From contig JBLDXI010000042.1 in NCBI GenBank assembly GCA_047495785.1, positions 2,418,001-2,482,000 of the forward strand: a stretch of DNA of 64,000 nt. The letters run 5' to 3'. The notes under the pieces were generated by a model. It ran no database searches. It was given only the letters and a program-made list of their open reading frames with translations, and had not been told where the DNA came from. The DNA comes from Lepidodermella squamata. Taxonomy: Eukaryota > Animalia > Gastrotricha. This document shows, piece after piece, positions 23,569-24,246 of this stretch (its first letter is position 1; every line of letters begins with the position of its first letter). The position numbers were made by a program, and so were the translations under genes.

Positions 23569-24246
23569 TCACGAATAATCGAAAAAAAAAGCAATGAAGT
23601 TATTCTCTCGTCTAGCTGTTGCAAACATGGAATTTCCGTCGTAAGAAAGGATACGGAAATCGCTAATAACAAATGACATCCCGAAATGCGCATCCTCCGC
23701 ATCAGCTCTAGAATCATCCTCCATTTCATCCCTACCAAATATTTTCATCATAATTCGGTAAAACAGCTCGGGTTCCAGCATCTTCACGTAACTTTCTTTC
23801 TCCGAAACTTCTCTTTGCAGATCCGTGGCGAGATCATTGCGATTAGCCAAATAATGGTCCATGTTGCAGGAAAATGATACAAACATAGCCCGAATTGCTT
23901 TCCTGATCGATATTTTATCAGCCTCAATACAATCAACAGTTTTTCTCCGGTCCCCTTTTTCAAGGATCTGATCATCGAAGGCTTCACGAGACTCGAAGTA
24001 ATCGATAGGCACAACGATAGCGCGAAATTGCCAATCACCCGCGGCGCTGGCTTTCAATCTCGGGTTAGGCGTGCGTTCGTAATCTTCCTCGGCCCATTTA
24101 CGCTCGAATTCTGCGACGACGTTGATGTTCGAGGCGGAAACTCTTTCGGTGACGCAAACGCCATGGTAATCCATGAATAAAACAGCGGGCAACGAGTGAA
24201 GTTTGTACACATTTTTCGCAAATTTCTCCCTGATTTCAGCAGACAT
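23569..24246 (-). CDS. Intronless 225-aa acidic protein of unknown function, immediately downstream of the giant gene (candidate cognate immunity/partner protein)
   Basis: ATG at 24246 with an in-frame TGA two codons upstream, so it is not a fused exon. Uninterrupted 678-nt ORF, with AATAAA about 75 nt after the stop (forward tttatt 23490-23495). No signal peptide or TM segment is apparent. About 41 D/E versus 31 K/R by hand count. Ends in aromatic beta strands (SYDGNSMFATARRENNFIAFFFDYS). Confidence 0.75.
   Translation of the reverse strand: MSAEIREKFAKNVYKLHSLPAVLFMDYHGVCVTERVSASNINVVAEFERKWAEEDYERTPNPRLKASAAGDWQFRAIVVPIDYFESREAFDDQILEKGDRRKTVDCIEADKISIRKAIRAMFVSFSCNMDHYLANRNDLATDLQREVSEKESYVKMLEPELFYRIMMKIFGRDEMEDDSRADAEDAHFGMSFVISDFRILSYDGNSMFATARRENNFIAFFFDYS

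Follow-up and report, generated by a model that had tools for sequence, protein, structure and literature searches.

A small acidic protein family encoded behind the variable tip of a giant SecA-like gene: a candidate immunity or antitoxin protein in small invertebrates

Gene organization of the locus

The window analysed here, a stretch of 64,000 nucleotides of Lepidodermella squamata DNA, carries on its minus strand an open reading frame (ORF) of 225 codons at positions 23569-24246, the coding region of which is uninterrupted in the window sequence. It lies directly behind a giant gene on the same strand that extends from about 53545 to 24381 and encodes SecA_DEAD, SecA_PP_bind and P-loop_SecA domains, as identified by searches run exon by exon. 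The first-pass annotation had given this neighbour ten introns, a plausible number in view of about ten exon-sized blocks with GT/AG ends, although only the last intron was verified by RNA. The features are as follows:

23569-24246, minus strand: partner gene encoding 225 aa, assigned to an unnamed family of invertebrates and candidate immunity or antitoxin protein (family search, AF2 model, RNA)
24247-24380, minus strand: spacer of 134 nt with a TGA (24250-24252) and an AG acceptor (24269-24268) (sequence, RNA contigs)
24381-25217, minus strand: final exon of the giant gene, encoding its variable tip at the C-terminus, here of the LHH...WNPxNLxxGP...DD type (sequence, RNA)
25218-27778, minus strand: last intron, GT..AG (removed in two runs derived from RNA)
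27779-28591, minus strand: exon with the His-before-Cys papain/OTU-like motif pair VGHAFY...NDCFY and with NxLLFxAG (motifs)
32184-35875, minus strand: two linker exons (sequence)
37559-46574, minus strand: SecA-like ATPase exons with SecA_DEAD, SecA_PP_bind, P-loop_SecA and Helicase_C (domain matches)
49104-53545, minus strand: N-terminal exons of the giant gene (sequence)
1-16466, minus strand: second tandem copy of the giant gene (exons 90-96% identical)

The second copy begins at 16466 and runs past the left edge of the window, which therefore includes neither its tail nor any partner gene it may have. No obvious signal peptide is encoded by the N-terminal exons of the giant gene. Its strongest hydrophobic segment, with a 19-residue hydropathy of 2.4, is located in the linker exon at 34838-35875 and possibly forms a membrane hairpin. 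No Pfam match was obtained for the OTU-like exon, and its motif pair points to a putative protease. Retroelement-like fragments are present in the introns of both giant genes (2127-2810, a reverse-transcriptase-like piece, and 40874-41410). Upstream of the giant gene lies an FNDC3-like gene (57798-62096, minus strand), judged by eye from tandem fibronectin type III repeats within a 3.3-kb exon of 60% GC. Just downstream of the ORF, positions 21735-23435 are occupied by an element whose terminal inverted repeats are imperfect (26 nt at 85% and 32 nt at 81%); it encloses a tandem array of 4.9 copies of a 181-bp unit (22136-23014) and looks like a non-autonomous DNA transposon.

The ORF starts 134 nt past the stop codon of the tip exon. 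An in-frame TGA (24250-24252) stands two codons 5' of its ATG, and joining the phase-0 donor of the penultimate exon to the acceptor at 24269-24268 would read into this stop. The N-terminus of the protein, MSAEIREKF, agrees with the start MSIKEKLE of its family. Taken together, the TGA and the matching start indicate a separate gene and exclude a 12th coding exon of the giant gene, as the first-pass annotation had already concluded from the TGA. The same annotation had described the gene as intronless, which holds for its coding part only: the splice acceptor lies 21 nt 5' of the ATG, and the mRNA therefore probably gains a spliced leader or a 5'-UTR exon.

Expression and the junction between the two genes

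In two sequencing runs, X2 and X3, contigs cover only the exons and the ORF, with the last intron removed, and both runs are therefore regarded as RNA-derived. The ORF is covered in each of them, which excludes the possibility, raised in the first-pass annotation, that it is not transcribed; the giant gene is present in the same runs, a co-occurrence at the level of whole samples. RNA contigs of the tip exon end at 24340-24342 and the listed contigs of the ORF reach 24260 at most, so that positions 24261-24339 are devoid of RNA coverage, the bin depth being fully explained by the listed records. This gap suggests two separate mRNAs and may reflect a trans-spliced operon junction between the tip and partner genes. 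Thirty unaligned letters are found at the 5' end of one variant ORF contig. An operon resolved by trans-splicing is thus a plausible arrangement, in which the partner is probably co-transcribed with the giant gene. A pyrimidine-rich AG acceptor approximately 17-35 nt before the partner ATG was seen in the window (24268) and in two further loci described below, L009 (about 1521) and L018 (about 2467).

A third run, X1, covers introns as well and looks like DNA. It contains several variants of the ORF and of the last two exons with 7-10% divergence, and their summed depth exceeds that of the unique intron; contig depth is no copy number, and these observations hint at co-duplicated copies. One ORF variant with 9% divergence has a spacer shortened by 72 nt (24270-24343), only 29 letters matching past the joint, so that the tip end preceding a paralogous copy may be a different one or have diverged.

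An unnamed family of small invertebrate proteins

The ORF had been called an orphan at first, a reading that was dropped after a phmmer search of 1.84 billion representatives returned 126 homologous clusters at E<=1e-3, 70 of them at E<=1e-10. The members with a named source belong to Brachionus calyciflorus, B. plicatilis, a Darwinula stevensoni assembly and Neoechinorhynchus agilis, and the protein belongs to an unnamed single-domain family of invertebrates (rotifers, an ostracod assembly, an acanthocephalan). Full-length members are small and soluble, almost all of them consisting of a single domain of 200-280 aa; 92% are net negative with a median charge of -10, and none has a transmembrane segment. 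The 225-aa protein itself has a net charge of -10, a pI of 5.0, no transmembrane segment (maximum 19-residue hydropathy 0.78) and an AF2 model of alpha/beta type (pLDDT 90.5, pTM 0.88) with three C-terminal strands at residues 193-224. The initial description as a small, acidic, cytosolic-looking alpha/beta protein ending in strands is therefore borne out.

The family alignment lacks an invariant column. Its best-kept residues are mostly aromatic or aliphatic, together with a few Arg and Asp, and neither a His/Cys catalytic set nor an invariant His or Cys was found in the family; from this pattern its members appear to be non-catalytic. A dN/dS of 0.23, obtained for one close pair, shows purifying selection on the family as far as this pair represents it.

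Profile and sequence searches of Pfam, NCBIfam, PHROGs, PADLOC and PDB sequences yielded no match common to the family; in Pfam, this applies to the query and, for a common match, to 79 members. The ESM Atlas features of the 225-aa protein yielded nothing shared either. A housekeeping or transposable element-derived family had been considered in the first-pass annotation, but no known family matched and the ORF lies outside the repeat element. Bacterial genomes and viral contigs were scanned with patterns, an insensitive method, and gave no match to the family, the OTU-like exon or the tip, and an equally insensitive tblastn search of plasmids and phages retrieved none either. Given the insensitivity of these scans, a bacterial origin is neither supported nor dismissed.

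Variable tips of the giant protein

Of 25 sequences homologous to the giant gene's penultimate exon, most carry the motif pair VGHAYY...NDCFY and 22 carry NxLLFxAG, beyond which the sequence changes. Locus L010 and the sequence P0136 are nearly identical as far as this motif and unrelated beyond it, and the sequences that follow it in L010, P0136, P0138 and P0142 are unrelated to those of the loci with an HH-type tip. A constant body with variable tips is therefore a feature of the giant gene upstream of the partner.

The HH-type tip, defined by LHH, N, G, WNPxNLxxGP and DD, is common to the window, L009, L016, L017 and L018. Atlas feature scores of 0.81-0.82, which serve as leads only, give a weak lead to the AHH/GHH2 nucleases of the HNH fold; the model of the window tip (pLDDT 72) matched no fold, and the tip had no Pfam match. 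The L010 tip is unrelated to the HH type, and its CAA and SCxxC motifs, judged by eye, recall deaminase-fold toxins, whereas a profile search with it gave no match. The further unrelated tips (L010 306-1091, P0136, P0138, P0142), one of them deaminase-like, come from bdelloid or bdelloid-like sequences and were without Pfam match where tested.

Linkage of the family to SecA-like tails

A family member stands directly behind an OTU-like exon and tip, on the same strand, in the window and at three other loci, L009, L010 and L018. L009 is a 4.4-kb scaffold of the Darwinula assembly that may stem from contamination by another small animal. The gap between tip and partner amounts to 134 nt in the window, 381 nt in L018, 452 nt in L009 and 2150 nt in L010. 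The four linked partners are mutually only 34-39% identical and are spread over three parts of a quick tree, where unlinked members stand among them. This suggests that the link is old or has been selected repeatedly, and adjacency by chance to so rare a tail is very unlikely. L009 also contains, 2.6 kb downstream and without a tip of its own, a 99% identical second copy of the 5' part of the partner (1169-1735 and 3802-4368), which is either a tandem duplication of the partner alone or an assembly artefact. In P0033, an annotated Darwinula fusion of tip and partner, the stop codon of the tip is passed over, and the fusion may be an artefact of the gene model.

The inverted-repeat element in the window ends at 23435, 134 nt from the ORF stop, and would offer a different origin of the arrangement, namely transposon cargo or mere coincidence. 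Since the ORF lies outside the element and the adjacency repeats in three other genomes, we reject the ORF as cargo and regard this explanation, including coincidence, as highly improbable.

The linkage is not obligatory. L003 lies in a proteasome/TatD neighbourhood, L004-6 in a CCDC39/XPD neighbourhood and L012 in an RNase-PH/vinculin neighbourhood; L007 follows a membrane-protein gene and precedes a Rad50-like gene, and L013 is probably unlinked too. Excluding L001, L002, L008 and L011, which had too little upstream DNA, as well as L009 and L018, which had been chosen on hints, one of the six assessable, unselected family loci is linked and four to five members are unlinked, mostly among housekeeping genes. 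Conversely, the HH-type tails L016 and L017, both from one sample, have no family member within 8.8 kb downstream. The tBLASTn-type linkage test proposed at the outset thus gave a divided answer: the position behind the tail of a giant SecA-like gene recurs in three other divergent genomes, but the family is not confined to it, and two HH-type tails lack a nearby partner. The stricter expectation of homologs only downstream of SecA-like genes with the same tip failed on the members in housekeeping surroundings and on the different tip of L010.

The housekeeping neighbourhoods allow a further explanation, in which a former partner of the system now works largely on its own as a host adaptor, a change that SUKH and SuFu proteins also underwent in eukaryotes, and the adjacency in the window is a leftover. 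Most sampled copies reside in such surroundings, and the parasite Neoechinorhynchus has kept the family, which, in the one pair analysed, is under purifying selection. On the other hand, the adjacency persists at about 65% protein divergence and in more than one branch of the tree, and in the window the two genes are both expressed; we consider this explanation quite unlikely.

The linked loci also bear on specificity, since the partner had originally been proposed to be cognate to its tip. A strictly cognate immunity protein that is exchanged along with each tip would fit the fact that three of the four linked loci (window, L009, L018) share the HH-type tip. However, L010 combines a deaminase-like tip with the same family, and partners behind the same tip class are 35-39% identical versus 34-37% across classes, as compared in four pairs. 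The partner sequence does not track the tip class, and one family accompanies at least two classes; this lack of co-variation argues against tip-specific cognate immunity, which we judge very improbable, and would suit either a broad scaffold of the SUKH kind or a binder of the constant body. The strict version of the proposal (cognate, tip-specific, only downstream) is not supported. Its core, a partner gene of the giant SecA-like gene, is substantively strengthened by the recurrent linkage and the varying tips, and an immunity-like role is plausible.

Structural neighbours and a possible chaperone role

A Foldseek search of PDB and viral structures found no relative of the AF2 model. In the Atlas structure search, only bacterial hypothetical proteins were weakly similar, the best of them belonging to DUF6210 (TM 0.37 by query, 0.63 by target), a family on which no literature was found. 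The best structural match was to Mog1/PsbP-fold proteins (Z 4.0, rmsd 4.1, 91 residues, 8% identity), among them SciW and EagT6, two chaperones of the Eag type (Z 3.5-4.0, rmsd about 4 A, 85-92 residues); Maf1 followed with Z about 3, and NuiA with a non-significant match (Z 2.5, rmsd 5.0). Values of Z <=4 are within the background of the aligner used. No SUKH chain was among the structural matches listed and no Pfam match to SUKH was obtained, though a weak match could escape. No match to a known immunity-protein family was obtained, by profile or by structure. Despite its confident model, the family is without clear structural relative and is possibly a new fold.

These neighbours raise the question of whether the partner serves the constant part of the giant protein, as a chaperone or inhibitor of its hydrophobic hairpin or OTU-like protease, comparable to the Eag/DcrB chaperones of Rhs effectors. 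The occurrence of the same family behind unrelated tips without co-variation, the Mog1/PsbP-fold matches and the hydrophobic segment of the giant protein are in line with such a role, while the background-level Z values and the two intact tails without nearby partner (L016, L017) speak against it. Eag genes, moreover, lie upstream of their effectors, whereas immunity genes lie downstream. We regard the chaperone or inhibitor role as unlikely.

Proposed function and its significance

We hypothesize here, as the likeliest of the explanations considered though at no better than even odds, that the partner is dedicated to an animal polymorphic-toxin-like system and would act in it as an immunity (antitoxin) protein of broad spectrum, in the manner of SUKH but with no implied membership in that superfamily. 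The giant protein would combine a constant body, made up of the SecA ATPase, the hydrophobic part and the OTU-like part, with exchangeable tips after NxLLFxAG; the OTU-like domain would release the tip at FxAG, and the tips would be enzymes attacking nucleic acids, HNH-like or deaminase-like. Lacking a signal peptide, the giant protein would be made in the cytosol, and the cell would therefore need a binder that holds the tip inactive. The acidic, soluble partner could supply this binding, co-expressed from a probable trans-spliced operon. A single scaffold would serve several tip classes, in parallel to SUKH in bacteria. Dispersed partner copies would act in trans, so that linkage would be loose and strict adjacency often lost.

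The gene order of tip followed by partner, as in bacterial toxin-immunity pairs, speaks for this role, as do its recurrence among poorly conserved partners, the tips that vary after a conserved motif, the small acidic single-domain make-up of the family and the second partner copy in L009. The probable operon would couple expression, and the presence of both genes in X2 and X3, on separate mRNAs, supports co-expression of the pair. By contrast, the HH-type tips are themselves acidic (net charge -6, -6 and -12), and this absence of net charge complementarity with the partner counts against immunity. So do the single linked locus among six unselected ones, the two HH-type tails without a nearby partner, the partner sequences that fail to follow tip class and the absence of a match to known immunity families.

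More tentatively, and in our judgement somewhat more likely to fail than to hold, invertebrates of several phyla may share an ancient chromosomal polymorphic toxin-immunity system, composed of a giant cytosolic SecA-motor protein, a self-cleaving protease, swappable nuclease or deaminase tips and a broad-spectrum immunity family, possibly of a new fold, in bacterial gene order and co-expressed from a spliced-leader operon. Toxin-immunity pairs whose tips can be exchanged are well known from textbooks as weapons of bacteria. If true, the conservation of such a pair in animals would indicate a so far unrecognised system of conflict or innate defence among small invertebrates, with possible roles in self/non-self killing, in an anti-parasite response or as a selfish toxin-antidote element. 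In the literature, the coverage of which was incomplete, neither this family nor a SecA-type toxin of animals with a linked partner was found described. The family, as yet unnamed, is now delimited, with a confident model and no known fold.

Comparison with known systems

The Eag/DcrB proteins (DUF1795, Mog1/PsbP fold), the weak top structural neighbours with Z up to 4.0, resemble the partner as small soluble companions of a large effector with a hydrophobic segment. They differ in that the match extends over approximately 90 residues out of 225, with an rmsd of about 4 A and an identity of 8%, and in that the partner gene is located downstream of the effector. NuiA, the inhibitor of the nuclease NucA, appears in the fold lists and is likewise a small acidic alpha/beta protein, in its case an inhibitor of an HNH-fold nuclease, but its match (see above) is not significant.

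Giant secreted toxins of actinobacteria that include a SecA-like ATPase (PMC8195603) also fuse the ATPase to toxin domains in one giant protein. In contrast to the present system they are bacterial and carry GT4, ART and MFS domains, and the passage on them mentions neither an animal version nor a partner family.

Among SUKH proteins, one immunity family serves both nuclease and deaminase tips (PMC3113570). The partner differs from SUKH in the lack of a Pfam or listed structural match, a SUKH-like working being proposed only; it shares with SUKH the occurrence of one scaffold beside HNH-type nuclease and deaminase tips and the detached eukaryotic copies.

Bacterial polymorphic toxin-immunity pairs were described by Zhang et al. 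2012 (PMC3482391). Unlike these, the animal genes are spliced, the body is a SecA-like ATPase, the partner has no Imm match in Pfam, and no bacterial, plasmid or phage homolog of it was found in the insensitive scans. Like them, the system presented here shows a constant N-terminal body, a protease-like domain before the variable tip, a small downstream gene on the same strand and extra detached copies of this small gene.
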